Positions 10,731-63,400 of a DNA stretch of 64,000 bases are shown here, in pieces. Every line of letters begins with the position of its first letter. Position 1 is the stretch's first letter. Position numbers and translations under genes: made by a program. The notes under the pieces are model-generated. The model had not been told where the DNA came from. It searched no databases and saw nothing but the letters and a program-made list of their open reading frames with translations. Where the stretch lies: the NCBI GenBank assembly GCA_002189035.1, contig NEEC01000016.1:1488001-1552000 (forward strand), given 5' to 3'. The DNA comes from Utricularia gibba. Taxonomy: Eukaryota > Plantae > Magnoliophyta.

Positions 10731-11285
10731 TCAGTTCACCGGCTCAGTCTCTGCTTCCACTTCTGTCTCAGTCACCACCGCATTACAGCAACCACACCCT
10801 CTTGCGCCACAGCAGTCGCAGTAATCGCCACCGCCACCTCCTCCCCGCCCCGCCGCCCCACCACCTCCCCCTCCCCGCCGCCACCCCACCTCCGCCTCCT
10901 CCGCCACGGCCGCCACCGCCACCACCTCTTCCGCCGCCGCAGCCACCTCCACCTCCTCCGCCGCGGGGACCACCTCCACCCCCACCGCATCTACGCGGCC
11001 TGCATGAGCCACCAGCACCGCCCCCAGGACCGCCACCGCGGCCACCACTGCAGCTGCCGCCCGGGCTCCCAGCAGAACCATCAAGGTGGTCCACCTCATC
11101 CCCAGCTTCGGCAGCTGAGTGAAACAAAACAAGATAAGACAGACATCATCTCCGCGCATTTACGAAAAACAAATCAGAAAACAGTCGATTACATGTGTCG
11201 GCGGTGCTCGTGCTTCCCCGGCAGACGCGAGGAGGACAAGCAGCAAGAAAATCAAAGCAGAGAGAACCAGTTTTGAAGCAGCCAT
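10731..11285 (-). CDS. GRP type A copy 1 (signal peptide, Gly-rich, Cys-rich tail); several 1-bp G-run deletions
   Basis: Exon1 11285-11193 (MAASKLVLSALIFLLLVLLASAG), GT-AG intron 11192-11115, exon2 11114-10731 ending DYCDCCGARGCGCCNAVVTETEVEAETEPVN. TATAAAT at 11333-11327. Exon1 is 93 nt versus 94 nt in A2 and A3. Confidence 0.8.
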
Positions 11286-12417
11286 TATTGGAAACCTAAG
11301 CTCGGGCTGAGTTGGTAAGGTTTATCATTTATAGATGTGAACCCAAACTAAATCATTATCATAAAACCTCAATCATTGAACATATAAACCACTGTTAGGG
11401 ACATTGACTTAATATTTTATGGCGTCATGAAACCATAGGTTAAAAAAATGCAATATCTGGCAAGGTACGTATCTATCTCTTTGCAAATGCTGTAAATCGG
11501 TTAGATTTTCGATCGAAATTATTGACGACAACTAAGAACGTCTTTTTCTTGTTAGTTGGATGCAGTGCATTTAAAGCGCGTGGGCCCCAAATATCATCCC
11601 CACTAACAGGTAATGACACGATAGTGCTGATGACGTGGCGCTCTCGTAAAATATCATCCTCACTAACACAATTATTGAAATAATTTCAAATAAAAAATGT
11701 TAAAATTAGTTGACCGGAGACCGGAACTGCACACTTAAAATATCATCATCACTAACACAATTATAATGAAAATTATATTAATATGAAAAAAAATTAGTAT
11801 CATTTTTTAAAATTTTGATAGTGAAAAATAAATTTTAAATAATAAAATTAAATATACGCGGCAAGTATGAATTATAAATTAAGAAAAAAAGTATTTGAAG
11901 GCAATTGAATAATAAATTCATTGATGTTATTATTTAAAAAAAATTTAGGACTTTTTATAAAATCAATTCAATTTATTACACCCAATAAAAAATAGGGTTT
12001 TTTTATTTAGGCCGGGCCTACCATGATAATCATATCAATGTTAAAAAAATTTGTATAGGGATAATAAGGATAATTTAAAAAATTGTATAAATTAATAATA
12101 TTATTTTCCCAAATGACATAATTGATATTTAAATTAATTTGATTGGTGGTGGTCTTGGATCCTCATTTATAAGATTGTTTTATCATAAATATACTATGAA
12201 ATAAAAATTGATTGAAGATCTAAAAAGTACTTTCTAATTTAATTCTCATTTTTTATTTTCCCTCTTATTACAAAAAGTAATAAAGATTTCATTTTTTTTA
12301 TTATAAAAAATAAAATATGTGTGTAATATGTTGTGTTTGAGGAGGAGAATGCAAATCTATTAATAATGTAAATAATATTTTTGTTCTAATAATAAAATGT
12401 ATTTTTTAATTACTCAC

Positions 12418-12535
12418 TGTTATGAGTTCGGTATCCGGTATAAGACCGATTTAAGGTAATAAGTGCGATCGGAATTATCACAATTAGTCGCGTTTTTCGC
12501 AGTTGGCTCCATTGAAACAAGAATGAGGAAGGGTT
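12418..12535 (-). repeat. Inverted terminal segment of the Tat-1 3' LTR
   Basis: Reverse complement matches the last ~120 bp of the 5' LTR, ends CATAACA and is followed by TSD GTGAG. Confidence 0.92.
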
Positions 12536-12539
12536 ATTC

Positions 12540-13129
12540 TTGAGATTTCTGAAGAGTATGGGGTCCAAATTATCTCGGCAGTCTCTGTCGTGTTTACACT
12601 ATGTAAGAACAAGCAAAAAAGGGGGATGAATCTCTTGAAATGTGTTCTTGATGTCATTTCTAGACTTTCATTGCATCGAAATCCAAAACGTACGGAGATT
12701 ACCTAAAACCCAATATGGATTCCATGGTGGAGTATTGGGTGTACACGCAGCACTGAAATACCGAATTCATTCATGTTCTTTGGAATGGCAATTATTGAGA
12801 GGCGGCCATACTTTTCAAATAGGGTCCATGAGTATTGAGATTTCTGACGAGTGTGTGGTCCTAATTATCTCGGCAGCCTCTGTCGTGTTTACACTATGTA
12901 AGAACAAGCAAAAAGGGGGGATGAATCTCTTGAAATGTGTTCTTGATGTCATTTCTAGACTTTCATTGCATCGAAATCCAAAACGTACGGAGATTACCTA
13001 AAACCCAATATGGATTCCATGGTGGAGTATTGGGTGTACACGCAGCACTGAAATACCGAATTCATTCATGTTCTTTGGAATGGCAATTATTGAGAGGCGG
13101 TCATACTTTTCAAATAGGGTCCATGAGTA
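12540..13129 (+). repeat. Two tandem 295-bp units in the B1 promoter
   Basis: Unit boundaries TTGAGAT at 12540, 12835 and 13130. Confidence 0.95.
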
Positions 13130-13291
13130 TTGAGATAACAATATCTGGATTTTAATGTTATATTATTTATTTTTTAGTGGAGTGATGGGATGGCACCTAC
13201 CCATTTGCGCTCTTGATTATTGATTTCAAGTTTTTGTTCTATAAATAGCGAAGAGGCATTCGTGAGTGAGTGTGAGCTCCGCGATCTGAGA

Positions 13292-13772
13292 ATGGCTTCT
13301 ACCAGATTACTTCTCTTTGTCGGGCTCTTCTTGCTCATCGCTCTCCTCGCTTCCTCTGAGGTTGCTGCTGTAAGAAATTTGGCAGAGGCCTCCAACGCCA
13401 ACACCCTCGATGCATGTAATGAAACAAAAAGAGCTTCTATTTGGTGTATGAACTCATTATCCTACTGCTACTGACTCATATATTGGTTTGGTGGGCTTTT
13501 TTCTTTCACTCAGCCAAAGCTGGTGACGAGGTACACAGCCGTGGCGCAGTAGAGGGGTCTGAGCAGTGGTTCCGTAGGCGCCGCCCAATTCGTGGGGTGG
13601 CGGCGGCGGAGGTGGTGGTGGTGGGGGTGGCGGTGGTGGTGGAGGCGGCGGCGGAGGAGGTGGCGGCGGCGGCGGCGGCGGCGGTGGAGGTGGAGGTGGA
13701 GGTGGTGGCGGTGGAGGAGGTGGTGGCCGTCGCCGCCCTCCCCTTAAATCTGGGGAGGAGTCCAAGAATTGA
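13292..13772 (+). CDS. GRP type B copy 1 (Arg/Gly-rich secreted peptide precursor); one -1 frameshift in a G-run
   Basis: TATAAATA 13240. Exon1 13292-13415 (MASTRLLLFVGLFLLIALLASSEVAAVRNLAE, GRP-family N-terminus); exon2 13514-13772 (KAGDEV...WFRRRRPIR-Gn-RRRPPLKSGEESKN*). Spliced length 383 nt, 1 short of a multiple of 3. Confidence 0.8.
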
Positions 13773-25050: not shown

Positions 25051-25059
25051 CTTATTGTA

Positions 25060-25973: not shown

Positions 25974-26520
25974 ATGGCTGCTTCAAAACTGGTTCTCTCT
26001 GCTTTGATTTTCTTGCTGCTTGTCCTCCTCGCGTCTGCCGGGGGAAGCACGAGCACCGCCGACACATGTAATCGACTGTTTTCTGATTTGTTTTTCGTAA
26101 ATGCGCGGAGATGATGTCTGTCTTATCTTGTTTTGTTTCACTCAGCTGCCGAAGCTGGGGAGCCCGGGCGGCAGCTGTAGTGGTGGCCGCGGTGGCGGTC
26201 CTGGGGGCGGTGCTGGTGGCTCATGCAGGCCGCGTAGGTGGGGGTGGAGGTGGTCCCCGCGGCGGAGGAGGTGGAGGTGGCTGCGGCGGCGGAAGAGGTG
26301 GTGGCGGTCGTAACGGTGGCGGCGGGGGAGGCCCTGGCGGAGGAGGCGGAGGTGGGGGTGGCGGCGGGGGGGGGAGGTGGTGGGGCGGCGGAGGTGGTGG
26401 GGCGGGGGAGGAGGTGGCGGTGGCGATTACTGCGACTGCTGTGGCCGAAGAGGGTGTGGTTGCTGTAATGCGGTGGTGACTGAGACAGAAGTGGAAGCAG
26501 AGACTGAGCCGGTGAACTGA
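25974..26520 (+). pseudogene. GRP type A copy 2, frameshifted
   Basis: Exon1 25974-26067; exon2 from 26146 has a 32-nt deletion (removes DEVDHLDGSAG, GCTGGG microhomology) giving an early TAG. The Cys tail is still encoded in another frame. Confidence 0.8.
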
Positions 26521-27747: not shown

Positions 27748-27907
27748 TTGAGACAGCAATATCTGGATTTTAATGCTATATTATTTATTTTTATTGGAGT
27801 GATGGATGGCATCTACCCATTTGCGCTTTTGATTATTGATTTCAAGTTCTTGTTCTATAAATAGCGAAGAGGCATTTGTGAGTGAGTGTGAGCTCCGGGA
27901 TCTGAGA

Positions 27908-28373
27908 ATGGCTTCTGCCAGATTACTTCTCTTTGTCGGGCTCTTCTTGCTCATCGCTCTCCTCGCTTCCTCTGAGGTTGCTGCTGTAAGAAACTTGTCA
28001 GAAGCCTCCAGCTCCAACACACTCGATGCATGTAATGAAACGAAAAGAGCTTTCTATTTGGTGTATGAACTCATTATCTTACTAATGACTCATATATTGG
28101 TTTCGTTGGCTTTTTTCTTTTTCACTCAGCCAAACCTGGTGACGAGGTCCACAGCCGTGGCGCAGTAGAGGGGTCTGAGCAGCGTCGGTTTGGTTTTCCT
28201 CGCCGCCCAGGAGGCGGTGGAGGAGGTGGTGGTGGTGGGGTGGCGGTGGTGGCGGCGGTGGTGGCGGTGGCGGTGGAGGTGGAGGTGGAGGCGGTGGAGG
28301 TGGAGGCGGTGGAGGTGGAGGTGGTGGCCGTCGCGGCCCTCTTCTTAAATCGGCGGAGGAGTCCAAGAATTGA
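27908..28373 (+). CDS. GRP type B copy 2; one -1 frameshift in a G-run
   Basis: Exon1 27908-28031; exon2 28130-28373 (KPGDEV...EQRRFGFPRRP-Gn-RRGPLLKSAEESKN*). Spliced length 368 nt. Confidence 0.8.
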
Positions 28374-42990: not shown

Positions 42991-45900
42991 TGTTATGGAT
43001 GAAATTTTTACCCGCACTTAGTCACGTTCTTCACGGTTGGTGCGATTAGAATAAGAGTGAGCTAGGATTTTTTACATGGAAACCGCCAAAAAGCGGAAAA
43101 ACCATGGAGCTGTCGGAGCTCGCCGGAAAAGATTTCCACTAGATAGAAGGAGGGGGAGGAAGACAAGGATACAAGTCTAAGAATTCTTTTTTTTTGTGTC
43201 CCATCTGGCGTTCGTTATAATTTCTCCTATTTATAGGAGAGCTCAGTCTGATCGAATTCTAACGTCTGCAAACATCGGTTGGTTTCTACTCCTGATATAC
43301 GATCTCGCTTTTCAGATATCGACCGCCTTTTATGCTGTTATTCGGCCGCATTTCAGACTGCGTCATATGACCATACCTGTCGGATTTCTGACAGATATCG
43401 ATCTATCGTCTGGCGTTATCTCTCCAGGATCGTTTTTGGCAGCTTTTTAGGAGCCGATTGTGTCCGATTCATCCCCTACCATTCAGCCCCTTTGATTTGC
43501 CGTTATTGGCCTTTCCGGGGTAAATTGGAGAATCAGAATCACCACAATGCCGACTCCCAAGGTGCCGCCTTGTTCGCATGAACCACCAACCGCTTTGAAC
43601 CGATACATCCGCCACGCATCGGCTCATAAACACACCATGTTTTTTCCCGCTCATTCTGGGTACCTCAAACGTCACGACGCTTTGTCTCCCTAACCTTTCC
43701 TGTATAAATAAGCGCCCTTTGCGTCAGTTCTTTCCTTTGCCCTCTCTATTGCCTGCAAGAGTTTTGTGCCCTCCGTGCTCCATCACACTCGTCCGCCACT
43801 CGATCGTCGCGACATCCGTCGGAAACCACCAATTTTCCAGGTATCATTCGGTTCTTCGTCTTTTTCGTTCAGGTTTTCTAGGATTTTTGACGGGTCCCCC
43901 TTGTCTAGGGTTTTCTAGGGTTTTGGGCTTCTTTGAAAATGGGTAGGAGATCTAGTGAACTAAACATCCTCTCCCTTCAAATTCGGTACTCGATCCCTGA
44001 TGAGTACCAGCTTTCTCATGCTCGGGATACTGAAATCCCTTGGGGGGTAGGTGAGGACCCCTGCCTCCGTTCAGTCTCCCAATTCCACTTGCTTATTTCG
44101 AAAGCGGTTTACGCTTCCCTCTTCACCCTTTAATTGTTCGTTTTCTCTATACCTTTGCAATCCCGATTTGTCTTGCTCCGAATTCCATATTCTGCTTTAC
44201 TACTTTCCTTTTCTATTCGGCCGGTATGGATCCGGCTATGACTCTAGTAGACTTCTATCATCTCTTCAAGATAGCCGTTGGAAGGCCAAGTCCCCGATGG
44301 ATGGCCGATCTCACTTTCAATTCCGCCAATTCGAAGATAATCCCAACTTTATTGTTAAAGCTCCCGATACCCACCATGATTGGTGGTCTTCTTTCGATTG
44401 GATAGCTCCTCCTTTGGGTTTTCGGTGGAACTTCCCAGTCGATACTCCAACTCCTTTCCGGATCAAGATCTTTGGTGCGTATCGGTCTTCTTCCGAATCT
44501 CATGAAGCCCTTTATAGGAGGCTTAGTCGGGGCTCAATTCGGTATGAACCTCGTGCCTTGATGTTCTCGGGTGAGTCGTTAAAAAGATCAGGTATTATCG
44601 GTCGTTCTCAAGACCCCCATTGGCCCGATATCATTCCTTTCGACGGCACCGATTCGAGAAACCTTCCTCTTAGCCCCTCTTCATCCTTTCCTCTTGTCTC
44701 GGCTTCACCTCCGATCCCCCCATCTGTTCAAACCGGGGCCCCCAAGAAAAAGAAGAGGGTTAAGGCAGTTGTGCACAGACCCTCAAAGAGGCAAAGAGGT
44801 AGTCAGGTTCATCTTTCCAGAGTCTCTGAATCGGACTTTGCCTTATCGTGTTTCTATTTTTCATCTACAGCTGAAGAGATGGCTCGGAGGAGAGCCTTGG
44901 AGGATTAAGTGATGGCACGTTTCTTGGCAGAGATGCGCCAAATGCAGGAATCGGAGGCAGCTCCTTCCGCACAGGTTTGTCCGATTTCTGGTAGTCCGTT
45001 AAGTGCGCCTGAATCTGATCTTTTTAACTTTTCTTCCCAGGCTGATTCTCCCACAGCTCACTCAGATGCTGCCGGTTGCCTCCCGGAAGGTCAAATCGTT
45101 GAGGTTTCCGAAACCCGGGAATCAACTCCTTCCCCAGCGGGGAAAGGGAAAGAGAGGCTCTCGCCTTCACCGATATCTTATAATGATCCGGCTCCCGGCA
45201 TTGGGCGGACTTCGGCTGGAGCTTCTACCTCCGTCCCTCCAAATGACATAGGAGAAGCTTCCACTCCTCCGATTCAGGTAAGGGATGATTCTGCTTTCCC
45301 TCCCTCTTCCTTCCCCTCTGAGATGTGGAAGGCCTTAGAAGAGGCTACCCCCAACATTGTGGGAATTCAGCCAGAGGTTGTACTCAAAGGAATCTGGCAG
45401 GTATGCTTTCTCCCTTCTTTTTTCCTTCTTCTCTCCCTCTCGAGTAGGCAAGTATATCTGATTCCTCGTCTGCCGATTCCATCATAGGCTTTGACCTTTG
45501 GGTGGGGAATGGCCAAGGAGATGGGATGCCATTCTGAGGAAGTCTCTTGGCTCCAAGCTCAAATCATGGCTCAGGATGCCAAAATAAAGTCGTTAGAGGA
45601 AGAAGACAGCGCATTGAGATGCATACTCGGAAAGCGTACCTGCCGAGAGGAAGAGTTGCAGACCTTGGTTAGTGAAATGGGGAAAGCAATTGATGATGCC
45701 AACTCCGAGAAGGAAGGTTTCAAGGTGCAACTCGAGGAGGCTGAGGCAGAGCAGAAACAGACCAAGGACCGTGTATCGGCCCTGGAGGCAGAGCAACTCA
45801 ATCAGGAGGCATCTCGGGGGAGACTCTTGGAGGACTTCGTGAACTCGGCCTGCTTTGCCGAGTTATCGGATATCTACACTGGGGACTTAATCGGCCTTCT

Positions 45901-48820
45901 CTTGTATCGGCAGAGGCGTCAGTTCAGCCGGGAATTCGAGCTTTCAATCATGGATCCGCGCTTCGACAGTGTGAACCCCTTGACGAAGGATGAAAACATG
46001 CTTGAAGTTATCGCGGATACATTCCAAGCCCCGGAATTCGGGTTCGAAGCTGATCCGGAGCGGCTGATTGCGCTGATTCGGGCGAGGATAGGGTGAGAGA
46101 ATGACGCCAAGCTGAGGGCAAGGATGGAACGGCATACCGGTTCCTCTGCCAATCCTCCCGATAATCCCCCATCCCCTCCTATACTTTAGTAATTTTTGAC
46201 TTGATTTTTTTCCCCCTAATGAGGGGCTTTTTGGATAATTTTGGTCTCCCTGTTCGGGGTTTCCTTCTAATTTACTCTATTTTTTCCTGCATCACTTTGG
46301 GCTTTGGTGACGTCACATTTCGGGGGGAGCCCCGAGTTGGTTTGTTGTGTCTATTACGTGCTTAGACTCGGAGATTCGCCTATGCTTTTGTGATCCGGGG
46401 GTGGGTGCCTCCTCGCCAACCTTTTGGTTGGGCTTTTTGATTTTAGTTTGCCTTAGTATTTCCTTATGCGAGCTGAACCGCTGCTAGGGAAGTAGGTTGG
46501 AACCCCTCATGGGTTGAGCGACTCCCCCAATCTGAAAGGGCCCTCTTCTGGCCACACCCCATTGTTTTGAACATGGGTGGATTTGCTTTGGGTGCTCTTG
46601 CCATCTCGAGATTCCGACAATAAGGTCAATACTTAAGGGCTTCTCGGGGCTTACGCGTGCGGTTTACATAAACCGGTGCCCGAATCGTACCAGGGCTTAT
46701 TCTTGCTTATTGACGCCTGGGTTGGTGGATCACACATATATATATCGAGGGAGACTCCGAGTCGATTTGCTGTATCCCGCATGGGACTCCGATTTTGGAG
46801 ATTCGCCTGGGCTTACGTTACTTGGCCAGAGCTTTAGATCTTTGATAGTCTGCCTAGGCTTATGCGATTTGGCCAGTGCTTACAGTTTAGTTTCCCATCT
46901 CCATTTCGGAGGAATTTTTTGGCGCATGAATGTTCTGAGGAAGAGAATGCCGAATCTTGCGTAATCCCGTGATAGAGATTTGAGCCGGTTAGGCGTAGAA
47001 TTTCCTTAGGTGTGATGCGTTCCATGACCTTGGGAATTCCGCGCCATCCAATTGTTCTTCCTCCGACATGTCTAGTTTCCCGACGTGTCTCTGTGGTTGG
47101 ATGCTTCGGAGTACCAAATCTCCCTCGGAGAACTCTCTTGAGGATACCGAGTTGTTGTAGCTCTTCTCCGTTCTCCTCTGAGAAGCCCCTAGTCGGCTAT
47201 AGATGCTTTTTCGCTTCTATTCAGCTCCAATTCCAGTTTTCGGAGGTCAGTATTTTCTTCTTCATTATAATGTTCCACCCGGTAGCTCTTCAGGGTCAGT
47301 TCGATAGGGCATACGGCTTCTGAACTGTAAACCAATAAGAATGGGGACTCTTCCGTGGTGGTTCGAGGGGTAGTGCGATATGACCAAAGTACCTCATCTA
47401 GGCGATCTGCCCATGACCCCCAAAATCTTCGAGCTTAGTCTTCATACCTAATCGGAGTGTTCGGTTCGTTACCTCTGTGAGGTCGTTGCTTTGCGGGTAA
47501 TATACCGAGGTGAAGTTGTGCTTGACCGAATATTTATCCAGGAATGCATCCATTTTTCCTCCAGCGAATTGGGTTGCGTTATCAGTCATTAGCTCCTGAG
47601 GAATTCCAAACCGAACGAAGATGTTTTTCTAGAGAAATCGGATAACGGTCTCCTCCGATATTTTTGCCAAGGCTTCGGCCTCTACCCATTTGGAGAAATA
47701 TTTGACACCCACGATGACGAATCTCCTTTGACCCGAGGTGTGAGGGAAAGGCCCCATAATATCCACTCTTTCTTTTAAATCTAATTGAACATCCTGCGCC
47801 AAGCAGTTGAATCGATCGATGAATCTTCGTAAGCTCTCTTTTAGGTGATCGTACCGAATAGAATACAGTGATGCCTTTGAAGGCGGAGCTTCAATGTTAA
47901 CATCGTATCGGGTCTTTCTTGGTTGCGCCTCTTTCTCCGCAGCATCTCCTCCTCGGTCTCGGATTCAGTCTCCGTATCTGGGGGGTACTCCGGTATAAGA
48001 GGTTGTTTCTCCGCTCGTGGTGCTGTTTCGGGTGTTCTCTCCTGGGCATTGGAGTTGAGACCTGAAGATGCCCGGAAGTCATTAAGGATTTCCGTTAGCA
48101 GGGCCTTCAGTTGCTCCCTGCTAGTGATCATAAGGCCGAGGTCTCGCACGCCGGCACTTCCGTCATGAGTCGGGTCGGTGGCTATGCTGTTTTCCGCCAT
48201 GATTCGTGATTAACGAGTGGCTCTTGTGGGTTTCTCAAATGGGACTGTGGAATGTAGCCCCACGGTGGGCGCCAAAAAATGTTATGGATGAAATTGGTAT
48301 CCGGCGGGAGACCGATTTTAGGTGATAGGCGCGGTCGGGAATGCCGCACTTAGTCACGTTCTTCATGGTTGGTGCGATTAGAATAAGAGTGAGCTAGGAT
48401 TTTTTACGTGGAAACCGCCGAAAAGCGGAAAAACCATGGAGCTGCCAGAGCTTGCCAGAAAAGATTTCCACTAGATAGAAGGAGGGGGAGGAAGACGAGG
48501 ATACAAGTCTAAGAATTCTTTATTTTTTTTGTGTCCCATCTGGCGTTCGTTATAATTTCTCCTATTTATAGGAGAGCTCAGTCTGATCGAATTCTGACGT
48601 CTGCAAATATCGGTTGCTTTCTACTCCTGCTATACGATCTCGCTTTTCAGATGTCGGCCGCCTGTTATACCGTGATTCGGCCGCTTTTCAGACTGCGTCA
48701 TATGGCCATACCTGTCAGATTTTTGACAGATATCGATCTGTCGTCTGGTGTTATCCCTCCAGGATCGTTTTTGGCAGCTTTTTAGGAGCCGATTGTGTCT
48801 AACCGATTTATCCCCTACCA
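42991..48820 (-). mobile_element. Non-autonomous Tat element (Tat-2, same family as Tat-1)
   Basis: LTRs 48280-48820 and 42991-43481; perfect Lys PBS 48257-48274; exact TSD AACAG. The gag N-terminus (MAENSIATDP) is joined to an integrase remnant; PR, RT and RH are missing. Confidence 0.95.
43939..46096 (+). pseudogene. Antisense accessory gene of Tat-2 with probable introns 44799-44870 and 45401-45487
   Basis: MGRRSSELNILSLQIRYSIPDEY...; KKKKR basic patch; coiled-coil C-part; at least one stop and one frameshift. Confidence 0.75.
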
Positions 48821-50531
48821 AACAGTTATTGGGATAAACGAGTTGCAGGGATGAAAAGGGACTAAAATTAACGTGAAGGTGCAGAAAACATAAAATAAAA
48901 GTAATATTGCTGGGTTTTACATCAGGGTCTAGCTCTTGTGTTACTCAAGAGAGCCCATAGACTTAAACCTAGCTTTGGAATGCATAAAACTAGAGTAATG
49001 GTTTGTAGAAACAGAGCATGGTTCGCAAGAACAGTAAATCGTGTTAAACTTAAGGCAAAGCACGAAAAGGGTAAACAACAACATGTTCATAAGCTAAAAC
49101 AAGGTCTACAACTAGTTTCTCATTCACAACAGGGTACTGAAATACAATAGAAAGCATAAAAACGACGACAATAACAGTAGCAAGTTCACGCAGAAAAGGG
49201 AGTGCAGAAATCTATAAATAAAAGTTGCAGGATGCTTCTATGGGCTGGAGATCTGCTGGGAATCGAAGTTCTGGTCGGAATGGTGGTGTAGACACAAAGA
49301 TCTGGAGGTTGCTGGAGACTTTTGCCAGAGAAACGATGTTCTCCTCGTTCCCGCTCGCTCCTGGTCGCTGTCTGTGCACTCTGCGTGCACCATGTACTCC
49401 TCCCTTTCTCTCTCCCTTCCTTTTCCCTTTTGCAGCTCGAAAGTAAGGGCATATTGGTCTTTTCCTCAGGCTTCTAGAAGGGAGATCTCTGCTCCATATC
49501 TTATCTCTTCATAAGGGTGGCTACTTTCGGCGAAAAGTGGCTTTTGCACAACTTTACTGTCCCTTTTGACTTGTCAATGCGGAAAGTACGCTGCTACAGT
49601 ACTAGCTCTTACCTTGGTAAGACTTAGAACATAGACTGGACAAAATATTAGAGTTTTCGGCTCAATTGTTGCCAATTGAGCCTGTTTTCACAATAAACAC
49701 ATTCTAGTAGACTAAATACGCAAAAGAAGATAATTTAGCACACTGAATTCTCCCTACAAAACATACTTAAAAACATATATAAAAACATAATTAAAATGGT
49801 GTTATCACTTGCCAAAGTATGTTTTAATTGCAACATCTTTGATTCAGTTTGAACCATCTAGACATCCTGCAGAAAATTCTAGAGGTCAATGGAGACATTT
49901 ATATTCAAAACCTGCAATAATATTTCCTTAGATAATGTGGATTTAATCCACGACACAACCTGAATATCATTGGCTGCCTGTTCTTCGAACTTGGGATTGA
50001 CAACGCTAGTTTCTGTTTCTTTTTCACCAACTTTCACACTAGTGACTACATCCTTTTCCATTGCTGGAATTGAACCATCAATATATCATGCCCTTCTCTG
50101 ACTAGTCAAAAATGTCCACAATAAATTTTGCCAAATCATATAGTTAGTGGTATTTAACTTGATGGGCACAACATGGGACAACAATGCAGGAACATAAAGA
50201 TTCGTCATGATGAATATCAATAGCAAGACTACCTACAAACTGAAACTTTCCTGCAAAATACCCAACGGCTGAAACCTATCAATGGAAGCTTGAAATTGAA
50301 ACAAACAATAATGCCAATACAATAACAAAATCACGCTGCAAAATATAATCCCACTTCTGAAACCATGTTGAGATTATCAAAAGTATATGAATAAGAATAA
50401 TTGTATGAACATGAAGAGGACTATTGACGGCAAAAGACCTTGGTTTTCACTATTTCATATGTATTTATACAATTGTTTACTTTTGACCTAACTACTGTAA
50501 TTACAACAATACCCTACACTATAATCCAACA

Positions 50532-50818
50532 AGTTCTTGGGCTTGCCTTCGACATCGATGTCTGGATCATCCTGGGGGCCATGGTGGCGGCCGTCGCAGT
50601 TGCAAGGACTCCTGATACATACGCATCTGGGCGGCCTGGGATGCAAAGATGGATGGTTTCGGAATCAGACAAAATGATGGCTTTTCTGGCACAAAACTCT
50701 TACACTTAGATGGGAATTACATCAGTGCGTCGGTGTTGGAGGTCTCCGCCATCTCTTTCGCAGCAGAAAACTCAGAGGAAACTAGGAGAGCAGCCGCCAC
50801 CAAGAGAACTAGAAGGGT
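50532..50818 (-). pseudogene. 3' part of GRP-family gene D (Cys-rich peptide precursor)
   Basis: TLLVLLVAAALLVSSEFSAAKEMAETSNTDAL; predicted intron 50720-50636; exon2 PPRCVCIRSPCNCDGRHHGPQDDPDIDVEGKPKN. Stop codon split by the copia LTR; 3' UTR continues at 31691 downward. Confidence 0.72.
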
Positions 50819-53800
50819 GAGAGAATTACACAAATAGTGTTAAATAAGTAATCATATTACAAAACTACATCACTTTTCCAACCTATTACACAACTAATGT
50901 AATTTTTATTTAAAAAATATCAATAGTATCATTTTAACTCCCAAAAATTTTCTACAATTAGGTTAATTACCATAACTATCTTCAAATTACAAAGGGAAAC
51001 TACTAATGATTTTTTATGTTCCATGCATAGAACCCTAAATGCAGGATTTTGGGCAGGGGATTGGAATTTAGGGAAACGGATTAAGCTAGCATTGATTATG
51101 TTCAATCGGTTTCGGTTGGCTCTTCCATCACGACCATTTGCAAGGAGGAGAGCTACATCCACCCAATCAGAATCGATTTCCAACAGGTAAATTTGCTGCA
51201 TCTTGTCATCTTGTCTTCAAATTTATTGTGAGCCTCGTATGCTACATTTTAGTGTTTCATGTTGTTCATCATTGATGAAATTTTATAGTTGCAGGTTTTA
51301 TGAATCATGTCAACCTCCATTGGAGTGACATTATATTGAGGTGGTAAATTAATATCAATTGGTAATCATACTGTTTATGATCAAGCTCCAAATGATATTG
51401 CAATTTTTTCACGTAACACAAGTTTTGAAGGGATGTTAACTCAATTACAAGAAATTGTAGGAGCACATGATTCATTGTTGAAGATTTATGTGCAATATAT
51501 GGCGATGGATAATGCAAATCATGCCAAATCTTTCTTTCTTATTGTAGACAGCGATCTCATGCTCACTTATCCCTTTGATATGCAGCGAAATGCTAGTGGG
51601 ATCAATACGTATATTGAAGAGGTTTCATTGATAGCTAATGCAGTTATATATGTATGTGTTTATAACTATTGTAATGTCTTTTCTAATTATTGATATTACT
51701 CATATATATTCATACATTTCCACCGCAGATGAACCACTTAGAAGTGAATCAATTCATCAAGATGAGATTACAAATGCTACAACAGAAAATCAGTCATCAT
51801 GGAATCCAAGAAATTTGTTTACGTCTTCTACTCCCCCTATATTAGTAGATTCTGTTGGCATTCCCTACCATGTTGATGATTGTAATATTGAGAAGGAATT
51901 ATTTGACACATCTGATTGCTTTGACTCCAAAGAAGCTTTTCAAATGGCCGTTCAAAGGTATTGTATAGAAGTCAGTAAAAGAGCATATGTTGTGAAATAT
52001 AGTACAAAAAAGGTATGGGAGGTGCATTGCCCACAAGAAAATGGAATGCGGCCTTGCAATTGGAGAATTAGAGATATATTTAAAAAAAAATTTCAGGTTT
52101 GGAAGGTTTCTAAGTATGAAGGATGGCATAAATGCTATATTAGCAACAACTTATCTTTGGAGCATAACAATATGAGTATGAGATTTATAGCTTCTAAGAT
52201 ACTTTCTGATATTAAGAGAGATCCTGCTATCACAATTGTTGAAATTTGTCGATTGATCAAAAATCAGTTCAAGTTTGATATTAAGGTGAGTAAAGCCCGA
52301 CGAGCAGTCAATTTAGCAGTACAAGAAATATATGGCACATGGGAAACATGTATTCCTAAATTGTCATGCTTCCTTCAAGCTGTTCAAGCAACAAATCCAG
52401 GTAACATTTTTACATTACTTATTGTTACTATATTATTCCTTCAATTATTATGATATTTTATTCTTCTTAAACACTAGTTTTCATGGTTCTACCATATAGG
52501 TAATGTTGTTGAATATAGTAATATACCTTTGGAGAATGGAAATTCAATGATGTATTATGTTTTCTGGGCATTTGGACCATGTATTGATGCATATAAGCAT
52601 TGTCGACAAGTTATTATAATTGATGCGACCCATTTGCAATCAGATTATCAATGCAAACTTCTTATTGCTACTGCTCTTGATGTTGGTGGTCATATTTTGC
52701 CATTAGCTTTTGCTTTCGTAGATGAGGAATCGAAATATTCATGGCACTAATTTCTTGATCTTCTTAGCACACATATTGTTCAAAGACAGCGAAATACATG
52801 CCTCATATCTAATCGAGGCTCTGGTTTAATAGGGGCTCTACCTTACAATTCTGCATTTAATGAACCTGAAGGTTATTATCGATTTTGTATGAGACATGTG
52901 ATATTCAATTTCATGGATAAATTCAAGAATTCTCATTTGAAAAGCATGGCATGGTCAGCTGCATATGCTAAAGATATAAGCAAGTTTGGCATTATCATGG
53001 AAAATATTCGAAAAATAAATGAAGAAGCACATCAATGAACCTTTGTTCATGATGGTGGTGCAAGGTATGTTATTTTGTACCTTATTTTTAGTCATTATAA
53101 TAACTAATATCAATTATATAGGTATGGGTCTTCATCATCAAATTGGTCAGAGATTATGAATAGTATACTCAGAGGTGCTCGTCGGCTACCTCCAACAGCT
53201 ATTGCATAGGCTACGTTTTTGCGTTGTCTGGATTACTTTCAAGAACATCAAGGAGAGATAAATTGTTTGAAACAAGAACATCATCTATGGCCATAAAAAA
53301 ATTCATTTGAGATATAGTTGGTGGGACAAAAAGGCTAAAAAATATTATGTTCGTCCATACAACACAAATACTATGACAACATATGTGACTATGCTAGGTA
53401 AACCAGGTCGTGGCCCTCGGGTTTACAACGTTAGTTTGAAAAACCGTTCCTGTACATATGGTAAATGGTTAGTTTACAAGATCCCTTGTTCACACTCAAT
53501 GTAGGTACTTATTTGAAAATTATTATTAAAGATCTTCCTCTCTAATTTTAAAATATTTACTATTTTATCTCTTTTCAGGTGTGCAATTACTTTAAAATTT
53601 ATCCATGTGAATATGTGCCAGATGATTTTAGTATTGACGTATTGGAAACCACATATTCTTACTAGTTTGAGTGTCCATTAGAGGAATCATGTTGGAAAGC
53701 TCCTTTTCATCTAGCTCATAATCCCTATTTCCGTTCTCAAACAAAAGTTGGTAGAAAGAGAGCCAAATGTTATCCATGTGAAATGGATTGACAGTGTGGC

Positions 53801-54878: not shown

Positions 54879-55607
54879 GTTTTGGGTGAGTGTCCGTTGG
54901 GAGTAGACAGCATCATGCGATGATCATGGTGGGCCAGGCCTAATTAAAAAAACCCCAATTTTTTATTGGGTGTAATAAATTGGATTAATTTTATAAAAAG
55001 TCAATAATATTAATGAATTTATTATTAAATTGCCTTCAAATACTTGCCGCGAATATTTAATTTTATTATTTAAAATTTAATTTTCACTATCAAAAATTAA
55101 AAAAATGAAACTCAATTTTTTCATATTTATTAATTTTTATTATAATTGTGTTAGTGATGATGATATTTTAATTGTTCTGTAGCGGTCTCCGGTCAACTGA
55201 TAACATTTTTATTTTAAATGATTTCAATAATTGTGTTAGTGAGATGATATTTTACGAGAGCGCCACGTCATCAGCCCTATCGTGTCATATGTGTGTTAGT
55301 GGGGATGATACTTGGGGCCCACACGGTTTAGCAATGCATCCATTGAACAAGAAAAAGACGTTCTTAGTTGTCGTCAATAATTTCGATCAAAAATCAACCA
55401 ATTTCCAAAGAGATAGATACGTACCTCGCCAGATATTGCATTTTTTTAAACTATGGTTTCATGATGCCATAAAATATTAAGTCAATGTCCCTCACAGTGG
55501 TTTATATGTTCAATGATTGGGGTTTTATGATAATGATTTAGTTAGGCTTCACATCTACAAATGATAATGAAACATTACCAACTCAGCCCAAGCTTAGGTT
55601 TCCAATA

Positions 55608-56183
55608 ATGGCTGCTTCAAAACTGGTTCTCTCTGCTTTGATTTTCTTGCTGCTTGTCCTCCTCGCGTCTGCCGGGGGAAGCACGAGCACCGCAGACACA
55701 TGTAATCGACTGTTTTCTGATTTGTTTTTCTTAAATATGCGGAGATGATGTCTGTCTTATCTTGTTTTGTTTCACTCAGCTGCCGAAGCTGGGGATGAGG
55801 TGGACCACCTTGATGGTTCTGCTGGGAGCCCGGGCGGCAGCTGCAGTGGTGGCCGCGGTGGCGGTCCTGGGGGCGGTGCTGGTGGCTCATGCAGGCCGCG
55901 TAGATGCGGTGGGGGTGGAGGTGGTCCCCGCGGCGGAGGAGGTGGAGGTGGCTGCGGCGGCGGAAGAGGTGGTGGCGGTCGTTACGGTGGCGGCGGGGGA
56001 GGCCCTGGCGGAGGAGGCGGAGGTGGGGGTGGCGGCGGGGGAGGGGGAGGTGGTGGGGGCGGGGGAGGTGGTGGCGGTGGCGGTGGCGATTACTGCGACT
56101 GCTGTGGCGCAAGAGGGTGTGGTTGCTGTAATGCGGTGGTGACTGAGACAGAAGTGGAAGCAGAGACTGAGCCGGTGAACTGA
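55608..56183 (+). CDS. GRP type A copy 3, intact, 165 aa (class II-like GRP with Cys-rich C-terminus)
   Basis: Exon1 55608-55701 plus exon2 55780-56183 gives 498 nt, open: MAASKLVLSALIFLLLVLLASAGGSTSTADTSAEAGDEVDHLDGSAGSPGGSC...G-rich...DYCDCCGARGCGCCNAVVTETEVEAETEPVN. Confidence 0.92.
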
Positions 56184-57065: not shown

Positions 57066-60000
57066 TGATGGTAACTTTGCAAGTGCACAAAAACCGTCGA
57101 AATAATAAAATAAGATCGTATCCACAGGAAATTGTTATTGAAATTTTCTTTTCAAACAAAAACTCAAAAAGACCGAAAACAAAAGAAAGATCGGGTTTTA
57201 AAGATAGTAAGAAAAGTGGACTTGGATCTTAGATCCACCTTATTTGAAATTCATCCTTGCGTGTGTGCAAACCTTGAAGACTGATCTACTTGCGTGTGTG
57301 CAAACCTTGATCCAAAAGTACCCTAAAAATCCACAAAATACACTTTCTCTCCAGAAAGATCAAAGTAGTGTAAAAGATGCAAAATCAATTGAAAATAATG
57401 AGAAAGTGGGGTCTTAAATAAGTAAAAACAACATTCAAAAATAATGGAAGAATATGTTTTGGAACGACACAAAATCACTGATAAACTCCCCCACACTTAG
57501 ATATTGCTTGTCCTCAAGCAATTGTTCAAGGTATTTTCCTCCAAAGTAGTAAATTGCAAATAGAATTAAGGCTAGCAAAATGCATGAGTTATTCAATATT
57601 ACACCATCCACTAGCTCCCGTTGCACGTAGCTACTCCTCACAGGTCACTCAATGCACTCAACAAAAGAAATCCATAAGAGGAGGGTGAAATGAAAAGAGG
57701 ATCGCTCAATACCTGAATGTAGGCGAGTCAGTAAACTTGCGCAAGTTATCCACTAGTTTCAGCAAGCTTGCGCAATCATGAGGTATTTTTCACGGGTTGT
57801 AGCATGGCAGGAGCTTGGGACAGGTAGGAAATTCGGTTGGAGCCTCCATTTCATGGGTAATAAGGAGTGAGCATCCATCAAACAATTCTGTCATGCTTGT
57901 CTTTTGATTTTTGTACTTCAAGGAACTCTTTCTTTTTCAGCTTTGTGGCTTCTTTTCAACACTTTAGCCTTTTTTCTTTCTTCTTCTTCTCTTTTTTTTT
58001 TCTCATTCATTCTTTTGTTCGAAATCAATCTCTCTCTGGATAGAATGTCTGTTGAAAATTCCTTCATAATTTGTTGAGATAGAGCTTGATTACTGAGTTG
58101 AAAATTGCTCTCAACTTTTCTTCTTTTGTAATAGAGCTCTTAGTTCTGCAACTTGCGCAAGCAAATGAACAGAACTATTCTCTAGATGCTCCTTCCTTGG
58201 GTCAAGAGAAATTGCATTAGGCTATAATTGTAAAAATGGGTTTGGCTTCTGATGTGGTAATCCAAATAAAACGGTTTCAGGTTAAACGGGGCTCACTAAG
58301 CGGATTCAAGGTGGGATAATAGAGATAAAATGGGGAAAATCCTAATGCCTCAATCCCTTTGCACAAGACCTGTAGAATAACCTAGTAGTATACACAAGAA
58401 CAAGCCCATGATCGTGGTACATTCAGGTCACTCATAAAGAAAAGAGAATAAAAGTGTCTCCTCACCAAGAAAGTAGGGCTATGTAGCTTGTGAAAGGCGT
58501 ACAAAATGAACAGCATGCAAAAGAATACCTTAGCAAGAAGCATGCCAAAAATCTAATGCACATCAATTATTTTGAAAACTGGACATATATCAAAACTCAT
58601 ACGAAAATTCAGATCTTATCTCTATAAAACCATTTCTCAACAAATTTATTAGAAAACAGAAAACACCAACTTGTTTTTGAATGGCAACAAGTAAGCCATG
58701 CCTTGGTAAAAGATTAACGTGGTCAGTATGGAAATGTGTGAAAGCGAAGAGCAAACCTCTTGAATTTTCCATAAAGCTTCTTTCATTTTCTATTGCTCCA
58801 TAATTTATTTTGAAAGAGCCTCTTGATTACAGAAATCACAGTCCATCTTGATTTGAAATTTCCTGCAAAAAAATTCATGGTTTGAAAACAGGACTAAAAA
58901 TTCATCACCTTTTATACGCCTCATCTTGTGCAAGTGCCCATCACGCCATGTTTTTGTTTGCTCTTTGTACAACTCAAATGGAAAGCTTCAGTGCATGGAA
59001 TTGTGATTGAAGCTTCCTTGAGTTGCTGCACTTTACAAAAGAAATCCTTGTCAAAAACATATTCTTCAACTAAATCATTACTTGTAATGACAAATTCTTC
59101 TTCCTTCAAATCTTTTTCTATGAAGCTTAGGGACCTTTGAACCTCCCCTTGATGTGTGTCCTGATCACATAATTTGTGGGTGTGGTCATCAAAAATATCT
59201 GCTGCTTCCAAATGTTCATGTGTAACACAATCTGCTTCTGTAGCTTGCGCAAGGTCAGGGACACGCATTATTGGAACTCCATCTTCAGTTTCAATATCCT
59301 CACATCTAGTGGGGGTTTCTTCCAATTGACATGAATACTCTAGTGTGTGGATGGCTTCCAAATCATTCAATTGAGCTTCCAACATTTGATTTTTAGTTAT
59401 GAGGTGCTGCAACTTGTCATGCATGTCATGCACTCCCTTCATTTGATCTGAAAATTCTTCTTTTATCTCTTTGATTTGTTTAAGAAATTCTCTATTCATC
59501 TGCTCTTGCCTCTCAATGATTTGACTCAATAGAACTCTGAAAGATGGGCATTGAGGTTTTCTCCAACTCTGATTTGAGTCATGTTGGTTGTCAACCCGAA
59601 ATGCATGACTTTCTCCTTGCGCAAGTCTACTGTGAGACTCCATGAATTTCTCTTCTAACTCTTCATCTTCAGAATCACTTCCAAAATCATTGTCCTTTGA
59701 ATCTAACGATGAATAAGATTGATACCTGGTGTATTGTTGATTTCTGGTCCTCCAATCTTTTTCATACCCAACATCATTATAATAAACATGAGATTCATTC
59801 ACAGACCTTTCTCTGGTGCAGTAATGATTTGTTGCTGGAAGTATATTTTGTTTTTTCGTCCGTGCTTGCGCAACCATCAATTGATCTCTATTGTACCTGC
59901 GTGAAGGTGTCAATTTAGAATATGAAATCAAATGATCTACCTGATGGCCATGTGATTTGTGCTCAAGAATGCATCTCTCAACACGTGATTCTTCAGGATA

Positions 60001-61496
60001 ATCTTCAGGATAAAACAAGTCGTCCATCTTCCGAGAACGCATCCTAGAATCTGCCACCCAAGGATAATATCTTGATCTAATTCGCCCATCAATATTCTCG
60101 AATTCGAGATTAAAGGTTACATCTCGATCAAGTCTCCTCATATCTACACAAGCAAATGATGAACGAAAATCGAAAACAAAAGATTTTTTTTTTACCTCCT
60201 TTTTTTGGATGGAGAAAATCAGCTGCTTGCGCAAGTGCGCAAATAGAGAAAAACTACGAAAATAACAGAAAAATAAGAAATAACCAAAAATGAAATCAGA
60301 AAAGAAAATCCAAAGGAATACAATTCCCCGGCAACGGCGCCAAAAACTTGATGGTAATTCTGCAAATGCACAGAAACTGTCGAAGTAATAAAATAAGATC
60401 GTATCCACATGAAATTGTTATTGGAATTTTCTTTTCAAACAAAAACTCAAAAAGACCGAAAAAAAAAGAAAGATCGGGTTCTGAAGATAGTAAGAAAAGT
60501 GGCATTGGATCTTAGATCCACCTTACTTGAAACTCGTCCTTATGTGTGTGCAAACCTTGAAGACTGTTTGCTTGTACAAGCTTTGGGGGTGTTATGCTAA
60601 AGTAGTGCTACTCGGTGTCCGTTATAGCATTGCCCCTTGTTTTGTGGGATTATGGAATCAACCACACCACCAGAGCCATTTCACCTCTTGTGATAACCCA
60701 TGTTTTTCCAACACCCAAATCTAACCCTTACACCTCTCACCTCGCAGACAGATTAGATAGAATGTGTCTTACCAATGATGTCCGATTGAGCACTTCTCCT
60801 TAGGTGCTTGAGGCCAACCTTTGATTGTCCCACACTTCCTTAGGGCTATATGATACTAAAGATCATGTTGGTAAAGAAAACGTTGCGAAAAATAGAATCA
60901 GACCTCAAATTAAATGCTGAAAAACATAGTAAGATAGTCATGCGCGCAGAACTTGCGCAAGCAAGGCTTCACCACAGATCCTCAGCCAAAAGCACCTACA
61001 TGCACAGACTCGACTCTAACATGAAAATAGACATGAAAAAAGGAAAGATACAAAGGAAAAGTGGTCAAAGACGTTTCTAATGGTTGAGAGGGTGGGGTAT
61101 TCATAGAAGAGTCAATCCAAATCTTTGTATTGAGCTTATTTGATGGGTTTGGATAAGATCTTCTAACCAAATCTTTTATTCAAATCTTCGAAGATCATCT
61201 TCATATCTCTATCTTATCCACGAATCTTGGACTAAATCTTCATTGATTGACCGAGTCTTGGGTTGAGATTCGTGGTCCATCAAATCCATAATTTGGTGGG
61301 TCTTGATTTCTCCTCAAATTGATCCAAAAGTACTTTAAAAATCCACAAAATATACTTTCTCTCCAAAAAGATCAAAATAATGCGAAAGATGCAAAATCAA
61401 TTAAGAATAATGAGAAAATAGGATATAAGATAAGTAAAAACAATACTCAAGAATAGTGGAAGAACATGTTTTGGAACAATACAAAATCACTTATCA
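57066..61496 (-). mobile_element. Non-autonomous Athila-type element (4.4 kb, no pol)
   Basis: 5' LTR 60349-61496; internally deleted 3' LTR 57066-~57484; tRNA-Asp PBS TGGCGCCGTTGCCGGGGA 60342-60325; PPT at ~57486; exact TSD GTAGA. Confidence 0.92.
58921..60141 (-). CDS. 406-aa open ORF of the non-autonomous Athila element (gag-derived or unknown, with coiled coil)
   Basis: First ATG after the PBS (MRRLDRDVTFNLEFENID), uninterrupted; heptad segment IIERQEQMNREF...NQMLEAQLNDL; acidic C-half. Confidence 0.6.
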   Translation of the reverse strand: MRRLDRDVTFNLEFENIDGRIRSRYYPWVADSRMRSRKMDDLFYPEDYPEESRVERCILEHKSHGHQVDHLISYSKLTPSRRYNRDQLMVAQARTKKQNILPATNHYCTRERSVNESHVYYNDVGYEKDWRTRNQQYTRYQSYSSLDSKDNDFGSDSEDEELEEKFMESHSRLAQGESHAFRVDNQHDSNQSWRKPQCPSFRVLLSQIIERQEQMNREFLKQIKEIKEEFSDQMKGVHDMHDKLQHLITKNQMLEAQLNDLEAIHTLEYSCQLEETPTRCEDIETEDGVPIMRVPDLAQATEADCVTHEHLEAADIFDDHTHKLCDQDTHQGEVQRSLSFIEKDLKEEEFVITSNDLVEEYVFDKDFFCKVQQLKEASITIPCTEAFHLSCTKSKQKHGVMGTCTR

Positions 61497-61899
61497 GTAG
61501 ATAATGTTTATATAATCTAATTTTTGTAACCTAATGCTAATACATCTACTTATTTTTTTTTAAATAAAACTCAGATTAACATGTAATTCATCTTGGACAC
61601 CCAACCCATGCCGCAAGGCAAATGTTTTATATTATATTGAAATTAAAAATAAGATGAGTTGAATAAATAAACATGAAATTTAAATACACAATAAATATGA
61701 ATCATATTAAAAAAATATTAGATCTAATCAATTACTAATGATTTGTAATATCTTATATATTTTACTTATTTCAATTTTATTTTACAATATGGGATTATTT
61801 TTTCTAATAAGAGTTCATTCAGAGGTGACTCTGGCATATTCATCTCAAATGTCTTGGGCAAAACATGTGTTGGTTGGCATTTCCTTATCCTATCTATTC

Positions 61900-62784
61900 T
61901 TGAGATTTCTGAAGAGTGTGTGGTCCTAATTAGCTCGGCAGCCTCTGTCGTGTTTACACTATGTAAGAACAAGCAAAAAGGGGGGATGAATCTCTTGAAA
62001 TGTGTTCTTGATGTCATTTCTAGACTTTCATTCCATCGAAATCCAAAACGTACGGAGATTACCTAAAACCCAATATGGATTCCATGGTGGAGTATTGGGT
62101 GTACACGCAGCACTGAAATACCGAATTCATTCATGTTCTTTGGAATGGCAATTATTGAGAGGCGGCCATACTTTTCAAATAGGGTCCATGAGTATTGAGA
62201 TTTCTGACGAGTGTGTGGTCCTAATTATCTCAGCAGCCTCTGTCGTGTTTACACTATGTAAGAACAAGCAAAAAGGGGGGATGAATCTCTTGAAATGTGT
62301 TCTTGATGTCATTTCTAGACTTTCATTCCATCGAAATCCAAAACGTACGGAGATTACCTAAAACCCAATATGGATTCCATGGTGGAGTATTGGGTGTACA
62401 CGCAGCACTGAAATACCGAATTCATTCATGTTCTTTGGAATGGCAATTATTGAGAGGCGGCCATACTTTTCAAATAGGGTCCATGAGTATTGAGATTTCT
62501 GACGAGTGTGTGGTCCTAATTATCTCAGCAGCCTCTGTCGTGTTTACACTATGTAAGAACAAGCAAAAAGGGGGGATGAATCTCTTGAAATGTGTTCTTG
62601 ATGTCATTTCTAGACTTTCATTCCATCGAAATCCAAAACGTACGGAGATTACCTAAAACCCAATATGGATTCCATGGTGGAGTATTGGGTGTATACGCAG
62701 CACTGAAATACCGAATTCATTCATGTTCTTTGGAATGGCAATTATTGAGAGGCGGTCATACTTTTCAAATAGGGTCCATGTGTA
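61900..62784 (+). repeat. Three tandem 295-bp units in the B3 promoter
   Basis: Boundaries TTGAGA at 61900, 62195, 62490 and 62785; units near-identical. Confidence 0.96.
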
Positions 62785-62946
62785 TTGAGATAACAATATC
62801 TGGATTTTAATGTTATATTATTTATTTTTTAGTGGAGTGATGGGATGGCACCTACCCATTTGCGCTCTTGATTATTGATTTCAAGTTTTTGTTCTATAAA
62901 TAGCGAAGAGGCATTCGTGAGTGAGTGTGAGCTCCGCGATCTGAGA

Positions 62947-63400
62947 ATGGCTTCTGCCAGATTACTTCTCTTTGTCGGGCTCTTCTTGCTCATCGCTCTC
63001 CTCGCTTCCTCTGAGGTTGCTGCTGTAAGAAATTTGGCAGAGGCCTCCAACGCCAACACCCTCGATGCATGTAATGAAACAAAAAGAGCTTCTATTTGGT
63101 GTATGAACTCATTATCCTACTGCTACTGACTCATATATTGGTTTGGTGGGCTTTTTTCTTTTTCACTCAGCCAAACCTGGTGACGAGGTACACAGCCGTG
63201 GCGCAGTAGAGAGGACTGAGAAGTTTGGGTTTTATAGGAGGCCAATTCGTGGTGGAGGCGGCGGAGGAGGTGGTGGTGGGGTGGAGGCGGTGGTGGAGGT
63301 GGAGGTGGAGGCGTGGTGGAGGTGGAGGTGGTGGCGGTGGTGGTGGAGGAGGGGTGGCCGCCACCCTCACCTTGAATCTGGGGAGGAGTCCAAGAATTGA
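62947..63400 (+). CDS. GRP type B copy 3; open frame but three internal -1 slips in the Gly tract
   Basis: Exon1 62947-63070 plus exon2 63171-63400 gives 354 nt: ...AVERTEKFGFYRRPIRGGG...GGRHPHLESGEESKN*. Confidence 0.82.

Follow-up and report, generated by a model that had tools for sequence, protein, structure and literature searches.

The 64,000-nucleotide stretch of Utricularia gibba DNA analyzed here (contig NEEC01000016.1, positions 1,488,001 to 1,552,000; hereafter the window) contains an array of eight two-exon loci of four types, named A1–A3, B1–B3, C and D. We read the array as a tandem cluster of ordinary plant secreted glycine-rich protein (GRP) genes of the PF07172 type, in which A1 and B1–B3 are interrupted by G's dropped in assembly and A2, C and D are damaged. 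Judged from sequence, we consider this reading probable.

The family gene plan would consist of an exon for the signal peptide and N-terminal region, a short intron, and an exon for the mature part. Type A would be a class II GRP, with a glycine repeat encoded by GGN codons followed by a six-Cys C-terminal module. Type B would keep the Gly part only, grown to 33–45 consecutive Gly between Arg clusters, and types C and D would be the same chassis joined to a four-Cys stretch, with the Gly repeat absent. The simplest reading is that the two modules of the family have been differently retained among these paralogues, rather than that foreign cores have been swapped in.

Eight loci with a shared gene plan

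A six-frame motif scan combined with direct reading located exactly eight two-exon loci in the 64-kb window, and a sensitive self-search of the window revealed no further copies. The loci are listed below in order of position.

A1, 10731–11285, minus strand: exon 1 11285–11193; intron 78 nt; exon 2 11114–10731; class II type with Gly repeat and six-Cys tail; ends in EPVN.
B1, 13292–13772, plus strand: exon 1 13292–13415; intron 98 nt; exon 2 13514–13772; 44 unbroken GGN codons between Arg clusters; ends in ESKN.
A2, 25974–26520, plus strand: exon 1 25974–26067; intron 78 nt; exon 2 26146–26520; probable true pseudogene.
B2, 27908–28373, plus strand: exon 1 27908–28031; intron 98 nt; exon 2 28130–28373; 10 + 29 GGN codons; ends in ESKN.
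C, 30131–30507, minus strand: exon 1 30507–30387; intron 122 nt; exon 2 30264–30131; Gly repeat absent; C-N-C-x4-C-R-C; ends in EPRN.
D, 50488–50815, minus strand: 5'-truncated exon 1 50815–50721; intron 85 nt; exon 2 from 50635; C-V-C-x4-C-N-C; KPKN ends at 50533; stop 50488–50490.
A3, 55608–56183, plus strand: exon 1 55608–55701; intron 78 nt; exon 2 55780–56183; the sole copy intact as assembled.
B3, 62947–63400, plus strand: exon 1 62947–63070; intron 100 nt; exon 2 63171–63400; 10 + 10 + 13 GGN codons; ends in ESKN.

These positions, and introns of 78–122 nt, agree with a first-pass annotation of the same DNA. Direct reading also confirmed the three core compositions that it had described: GGN repeats followed by C-x-CC-x4-C-x-CC in A, Arg-flanked poly-Gly without Cys in B, and a Gly-free C-x-C-x4-C-x-C in C and D. 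Two of its generalizations hold for all loci but D. A signal/pro exon 1, assigned to every locus, is present in seven of the eight, but D has no in-frame ATG and its exon 1 homology starts inside the signal peptide. A terminal Asn, likewise assigned to all, is found in the A, B and C types (EPVN, ESKN and EPRN, respectively, each followed by a stop codon), but in D a TTG codon stands directly after KPKN and the frame continues for 14 codons to its stop.

The loci share further features of gene structure. The exon 1 products have strongly hydrophobic cores (12-residue Kyte-Doolittle (KD) means of 3.2–3.6). The introns are T-rich, and their 3' ends consist of a pyrimidine tract and CAG. A TATAAA box lies 48–55 nt 5' of the ATG in all ATG-bearing copies but A3 (A1, −48; C, −55), and AATAAA lies 41–69 nt 3' of the stops (A1, 69 nt). 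At 55555–55565, A3 has TACAAA in place of the TATAAA box of A1 and A2. The architecture shared by the eight loci is far beyond chance.

A homologous chassis

Within the window, exon 1 of B, C and D shares 70–77% DNA identity over 73–95 nt (E values of 1e-9 to 5e-6), and the 5' untranslated region (UTR) can be aligned between B and C from TATAAA to ATG. Exon 1 of A lacks a 30-nt piece, the SEVAA-R-LAE part. A and B share the donor context CAT/GTAAT, a phase-1 intron and the acceptor (TTTCACTCAG), and the first ~30 nt of their second exons match (p about 0.002 by shuffling). The start of exon 2 also matches between B and C (p about 0.014 by shuffling). At the other end, all four types close with similar codons (GAG/AAG, CCN/TCC, NNG, AAY). 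The chassis is a single homologous one. Its parts are the promoter and 5'UTR, the signal exon, the position of the intron and, within exon 2, the first ~15 codons together with the final four.

We compared the exons to Pfam. The Pfam scans, like our other searches, used single exons, the exon 1 pieces of B, C and D being 31–41 residues long. Exon 1 alone matched the PF07172 profile with 19.4 bits for B3, 18.0 bits for C and 17.1 bits for D (E values of 0.0017–0.0087), over profile positions 1–31, and the SSEVAA-type N-terminal region corresponds to the start of the hidden Markov model. The gathering score is 30, and these scores fall below it because only single exons were scanned. Part of what the PF07172 profile detects is known to be the signal peptide (PMC2912341). 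We therefore gave the DNA-level homology more weight than the Pfam match.

Comparison of the predicted products with the definition of class II GRPs (PMC5852109) places the A type in that class. The signal-peptide feature is found in MAASKLVLSALIFLLLVLLASAG, with a 12-residue KD mean of 3.29, as judged by hydropathy. The Gly-repeat feature is present in A3, with 59 GGN codons, and is absent from C and D. The Cys-tail feature, C-x-CC-x4-C-x-CC, occurs 17 residues before the stop in A1–A3. The class I feature, a signal peptide followed by (GGX)n, is carried by B1–B3 in the form of 33–44 GGN codons in which X is itself Gly, and whose frame runs on from exon 1 only on the assumption that single G's are missing. 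Judged by its predicted product, B is an extreme class I-like GRP. A and B have the PF07172-type composition (hydrophobic core with KD of 3.2–3.3; 33–60 GGN codons), whereas C and D, with exon 2 lacking a Gly repeat, do not.

Single-base losses in the glycine arrays

A3 is the only copy that, as assembled, can be read in the described frame all the way from ATG to stop. Its 59 GGN codons, in runs of three or more, are in frame and lead into D-Y-C-D-C-C-G-A-R-G-C-G-C-C and an acidic tail to EPVN. Inside an in-frame GGN array, runs of G can be only 2, 5 or 8 long, and all eight interior G runs of A3 are five long (G5).

A1 and B1–B3 depart from this rule. A1 has G4 in exon 1 where A2 and A3 have G5, and five G4 runs in the array where A3 has G5, for a total of six bases lost. 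Its frame is regained only at the Cys tail; the open reading frame (ORF) stays open and is Ala/Val-rich instead of Gly-rich. B1 has a single G4 at 13594, at the start of the array, which offsets the poly-Gly and the terminal ESKN by one base from the frame of exon 1. In B2 a single G4 at 28237 shifts the frame after ten Gly, and from there on the poly-Gly and ESKN no longer follow the frame of exon 1. B3 has three single-base losses, at 63278, about 63307 and 63351 (two G4 runs and one G missing from a GG pair). The net change of −3 keeps the B3 ORF open, with a middle part that reads V/E/A and then W/R where Gly is expected.

All ten single-base changes counted in A1 and B1–B3 are losses, nine of them in G5 runs and the tenth in the GG pair of B3, and none of the runs in these copies carries an extra base. 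Where one frame segment meets the next, a remnant codon of exactly 2 nt is left. The stretches that are nominally out of frame retain perfect GGN codons with mixed third bases, 44 consecutively in B1. In the first nine Gly codons of B2 and B3, which are about 12% diverged, the third base differs at five of nine positions and the first and second bases at none of 18. Variation restricted to third bases argues that Gly has been selected since these copies diverged.

As the most likely cause of the frame breaks in A1 and B1–B3 we propose the loss of single G's during assembly, an explanation that we hold to be fairly probable. It is favored by the occurrence of losses only, never gains, nearly all in G5 runs, together with the perfect GGN periodicity.

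Base composition at the third codon positions was also recorded. In the arrays of B1–B3 (13594–13727, 28208–28328 and 63249–63353), third bases are in the order T > C > A, with G in only 1–2 of 33–44. The few GGG codons of these arrays coincide exactly with the one-base losses.

Damaged copies

A2, C and D look truly damaged. Exon 2 of A2 has a 32-nt deletion flanked by GCTGGG microhomology, a 5-nt deletion and further run-length changes (G9 and two G4), and a stop is reached 11 codons past the splice site, after AAEAGEPGRQL.

The C donor reads CAT/GAAAT, with GA rather than the GT of the CAT/GTAAT found in A, B and D, and a TGA lies in frame there. C is otherwise intact, with TATA box, ATG, acceptor, a 43-codon exon 2, stop and AATAAA. 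Since the rest of the gene is intact, the donor change would be a single recent lesion or a base error. Other donors were considered and rejected: the lone upstream GT (GAG/GTTTCT) puts the intron in the wrong phase and leads to an early stop, and a donor placed anywhere downstream takes in the TGA. Near the end of C (30134–30175, minus strand), the PPRPPVAAAAG stretch reads Gly/Ser/Arg-rich (GSGGRG-like) in another frame. A lost Gly repeat may survive, shifted in frame, as the tail of C; the resemblance of the GSGGRG-like stretch to the start of the A Gly domain is weak and not significant (p 0.15).

D combines its missing start and changed terminus with an intron of phase 2 rather than phase 1. 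We looked for the displaced 5' end, and a homologous piece was not found within 3 kb upstream. In place of the missing end, 50819–51171 is 86% identical to 29030–29367, 3' of C. This similarity suggests that a deletion between two neighboring genes of the C type removed the 5' end of D.

Duplication and probable gene conversion

Self-comparison of the window identified a repeated unit of A, B and C, seen as A2-B2-C (C on the minus strand), as A3-transposon-B3 with an inverted homologue of the region upstream of C, and as A1 (minus strand)-B1 with the A segment inverted. An ancestral A, B, C unit probably underwent about three duplications, along with one inversion and a number of transposon insertions. 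The inverted homologue occupies 63531–64000 on the plus strand and is 81% identical to the C-upstream region 30750–31218. It points to a further, putative C-type gene on the plus strand about 244 nt beyond the window end.

B1 and B3 are mosaics. Over 12620–13540, a span that extends from the promoter with a 295-bp tandem repeat through exon 1 and the intron to ~40 nt into exon 2, they differ at nine positions and are 99% identical; from 13555 on they differ at 24–38 positions per 100 nt. The exchange boundary is sharp and lies about 40 nt into exon 2, at the border between chassis and core. A1 is also a mosaic, with exon 1 and intron identical to those of A2 and an A3-like upstream region. These mosaics indicate gene conversion or unequal exchange, which would homogenize the chassis and end at the chassis/core border. 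In the proposed mechanism, conversion keeps the promoter, exon 1, intron and first ~40 nt of exon 2 alike, and diversity would arise by expansion and contraction of the repeat and by loss of modules.

The 295-bp tandem repeat is present in two copies before B1 (12540–13136, plus strand) and in three before B3 (61900–62791), with 97–98% matches, and it ends about 155 nt 5' of the ATG. Its copy number could be a difference in promoter dosage between the otherwise identical 5' regions of B1 and B3.

Weighing the alternatives

Several observations count against the interpretation of the array as a cluster of ordinary GRP genes with assembly-dropped G's. The shortened G5 runs are unevenly distributed (none of eight in A3, five of eight in A1). 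B2 and B3 break at a common site, which could be inherited. A3, the sole copy intact as assembled, has lost its TATA box. The PF07172 match is absent for exon 1 of A and for all exon 2 pieces in the single-exon Pfam scans. In local DNA alignment, the A3 tail is no closer to exon 2 of C or D than shuffled sequences are (p 0.53 and 0.30, respectively), and the loop between the Cys groups differs by one residue. Exon 2 of C and D match each other with p 0.008 by shuffling, mostly from the terminal codons. Lastly, no outside relatives of these genes were retrieved by protein, metagenome and structure-database searches with single exons, and for this reason family membership rests on architecture, on sub-gathering Pfam matches (17–19 bits versus 30) and on composition.

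These searches covered several collections. Word-index protein searches gave no matches for C exon 2, A3 exon 2 or B3 exon 1; for A3 exon 2, 8000 candidates were scored and none reached E ≤ 1, in a search with sensitivity limited by composition filters and a length window. Exhaustive phmmer comparison of C exon 2 to 1.84 billion representatives returned three matches, all to repeat proteins of 957–2649 residues with unrelated composition, which we judged spurious. The ESM Atlas gave no usable match. In a PDB sequence search the C core drew a blank, and the A tail showed chance-level matches only (E values of 3.7–5). Metagenome scans with B exon 1 and with the exon 1 alignment gave no confirmed relative, exact look-up of ten window ORFs in a sequence collection found none, and a motif text search of papers yielded only noise. 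For the Gly-free four-Cys form, the failure to find relatives is a weak negative, since the query was only 43 residues long and this genome is missing from the databases.

The alternative that has to be reckoned with most is that the frame breaks are real, and that the array is in decay and made up almost entirely of pseudogenes. The lesions of A2, C and D are not of the homopolymer type and would be expected of such an array, as would the transposon-rich neighborhood; the common break site of B2 and B3 and the contrast between A1 and A3 in G5 shortening also fit. However, the ten single-base changes in A1 and B1–B3 are all losses, nine in G5 runs, with no gain, and neutral decay would not leave perfect GGN periodicity 3' of the breaks despite many third-base differences. 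Promoters, splice sites, stops and poly(A) signals are also retained. The selection on Gly since B2 and B3 split is incompatible with an old real mutation at their shared break site. We regard wholesale decay as unlikely.

The first-pass annotation had proposed that one scaffold serves three chemically different peptide cargos, with the core swapped on the fixed scaffold of a fast-evolving secreted peptide locus. On such a model the array encodes precursors with a fixed signal/pro scaffold and exchanged cores, from which shepherin-like defense or signaling peptides are released by proteolysis. The common chassis, the cores unrelated in composition, the B1/B3 exchange boundary at the chassis/core border and the Arg clusters flanking the B core can all be cited for it, as can the finding that C-terminal Cys-rich fragments of class II GRPs have ligand or antifungal activity by themselves (PMC7576778; PMC7411634). 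Part of the proposal survives: a homologous chassis does carry different mature parts, and the exchange boundary falls where it should, but free swapping of cores does not. Direct support is confined to the homogenization of the chassis by exchange that stops at this border. The three cargos are better read as combinations of two standard modules, Gly + Cys in A, Gly only in B, and Cys only in C/D. A conforms to the usual definition of class II and B to that of class I (PMC5852109), and the "pro" region is the normal N-terminal region of the family. A poly-Gly of 33–45 residues is unlikely as a bioactive peptide, so that release is implausible for B with its forty Gly, and both Gly-free copies in the window are defective. 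Discrete peptide release is not indicated for A or B and is possible for the C type. We consider a peptide-precursor array improbable.

The weakest alternative, that GGN repeats open in three frames have led to the retention of the shifted readings as new secreted Ala/Val/Glu-rich or Trp/Arg-rich proteins, draws on the fact that A1 and B3 are open from ATG to the normal stop through net losses of six and three bases, but it is very improbable, since variation at third bases only argues for selection on the Gly frame, chance alone would give a net loss divisible by three in roughly one third of copies, and the conserved C-terminus of B1 and B2 is lost through the shift. The open Ala/Val-rich frame of A1 in particular was rejected as a real product on the parity and third-base arguments. 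The preferred reading is still that of a GRP cluster with G's dropped in A1 and B1–B3.

Comparison with known glycine-rich proteins and peptides

We compared the predicted modules to those of characterized systems. One short intron after the exon for the signal and N-terminal region, as seen here, is also the arrangement of the petunia and bean GRP genes. As in class I and PF07172 GRPs, a signal peptide is followed by a Gly repeat, the genes are arranged in tandem and the repeats vary in length. Type B differs from class I GRPs in being extreme: there are 33–45 consecutive Gly with no interspersed residue, and Arg clusters on both sides. Tandem GRP clusters are known, for example the Arabidopsis At2g05380–At2g05530 homologues listed in PMC6161759.

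The activity of known class II GRPs resides in their Cys-rich C-terminus. In Cuscuta CrGRP this part acts as a ligand for tomato CuRe1 (the Crip21 epitope; PMC7576778); in LsGRP1 of Lilium it has antifungal activity, and AtGRP3 and CpGRP1 bind WAKs through it (PMC7411634). The A tail has the same single-pair-single-pair order of its six Cys, C..CC..C..CC, as Crip29 of the Cuscuta GRP (PMC7576778), but its loops are far shorter (C-x-CC-x4-C-x-CC, compared to C-x4-CC-x8-C-x2-CC in Crip29). Class II GRPs have GGxxxGG repeats, whereas the Gly domain here consists of nearly pure GGN codons and has extra scattered Cys. A sequence-level match to known members was not obtained, and C and D are without the Gly domain.

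The proteins would enter the secretory pathway, lose a cleavable signal peptide and reside in the wall or apoplast. There, the Gly repeat would serve as a flexible or self-associating spacer, and the disulfide-bonded Cys module would be the interacting end, as in AtGRP3-WAK1, CrGRP/Crip21-CuRe1 and the antifungal LsGRP1 C-terminus.

Two peptide systems offer further comparisons. The shepherins of Capsella are Gly/His-rich linear peptides, said to be released from a secreted Gly-rich precursor, shep-GRP. The genes described here share with shep-GRP the form of a secreted Gly-rich precursor, but His-rich repeats, repeated peptide units and spacer dipeptides are absent. Protegrin-1 is a two-disulfide β-hairpin with the spacing C-x-C-x4-C-x-C. 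C and D have this same spacing, and a short disulfide-laddered hairpin is a plausible fold for them by analogy. There is no sequence or evolutionary relation to protegrins, and C and D are not cationic, D being acidic past the motif.

Neighboring elements

The DNA of the window is plant-like and nuclear, and apart from the eight loci it is mostly transposon sequence. A Ty3/gypsy-type long terminal repeat (LTR) retrotransposon occupies 1–9530, with ORFs for gag, protease, reverse transcriptase, RNase H and integrase in at least nine pieces and with LTRs (229–640 and 9129–9529) that are 89% identical. Related, more diverged copies lie at 43012–48820 (reverse) and 32437–37859. Between A3 and B3, a 495-codon open frame (58921–60408, minus strand) encodes an acidic product with a coiled-coil-like second half and no Pfam match. 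This frame lies in the ~5 kb of extra spacing between A3 and B3 relative to A2 and B2, and is probably part of an inserted element. Just upstream of D, a 271-codon ORF with an ATG (51638–52453, plus strand) resembles by eye the N-terminal DNA-binding region of MULE/MuDR transposases, and has no Pfam match at E ≤ 0.001.

Implications

The A and B genes belong to a well-known family and are ordinary representatives of it. Their repeats carry a lesson for the reading of such genes in assembled genomes. GGN repeats are open in three frames, so that one-base assembly errors give plausible wrong proteins, Ala/Val-rich or Trp/Arg-rich, and not obvious stops. The parity of G runs (2, 5, 8 and so on in a GGN array) provides a means of detecting such errors that needs no reference.

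The Gly-free copies allow a more tentative suggestion, and a rather unlikely one: C and D may represent young, lineage-restricted, secreted four-Cys hairpin peptides, derived from a GRP gene by loss of the repeat and active on their own as a ligand or antimicrobial. The mature parts could then diversify on one constant secretion chassis by way of gene conversion ending at the chassis/core border, and B, with ~45 Gly, would be a second unusual product. If Gly-free copies are functional somewhere in the genome, a wall-protein gene would have become a gene for a small Cys peptide with its promoter, leader and intron kept, and the array would record the birth of a peptide gene.

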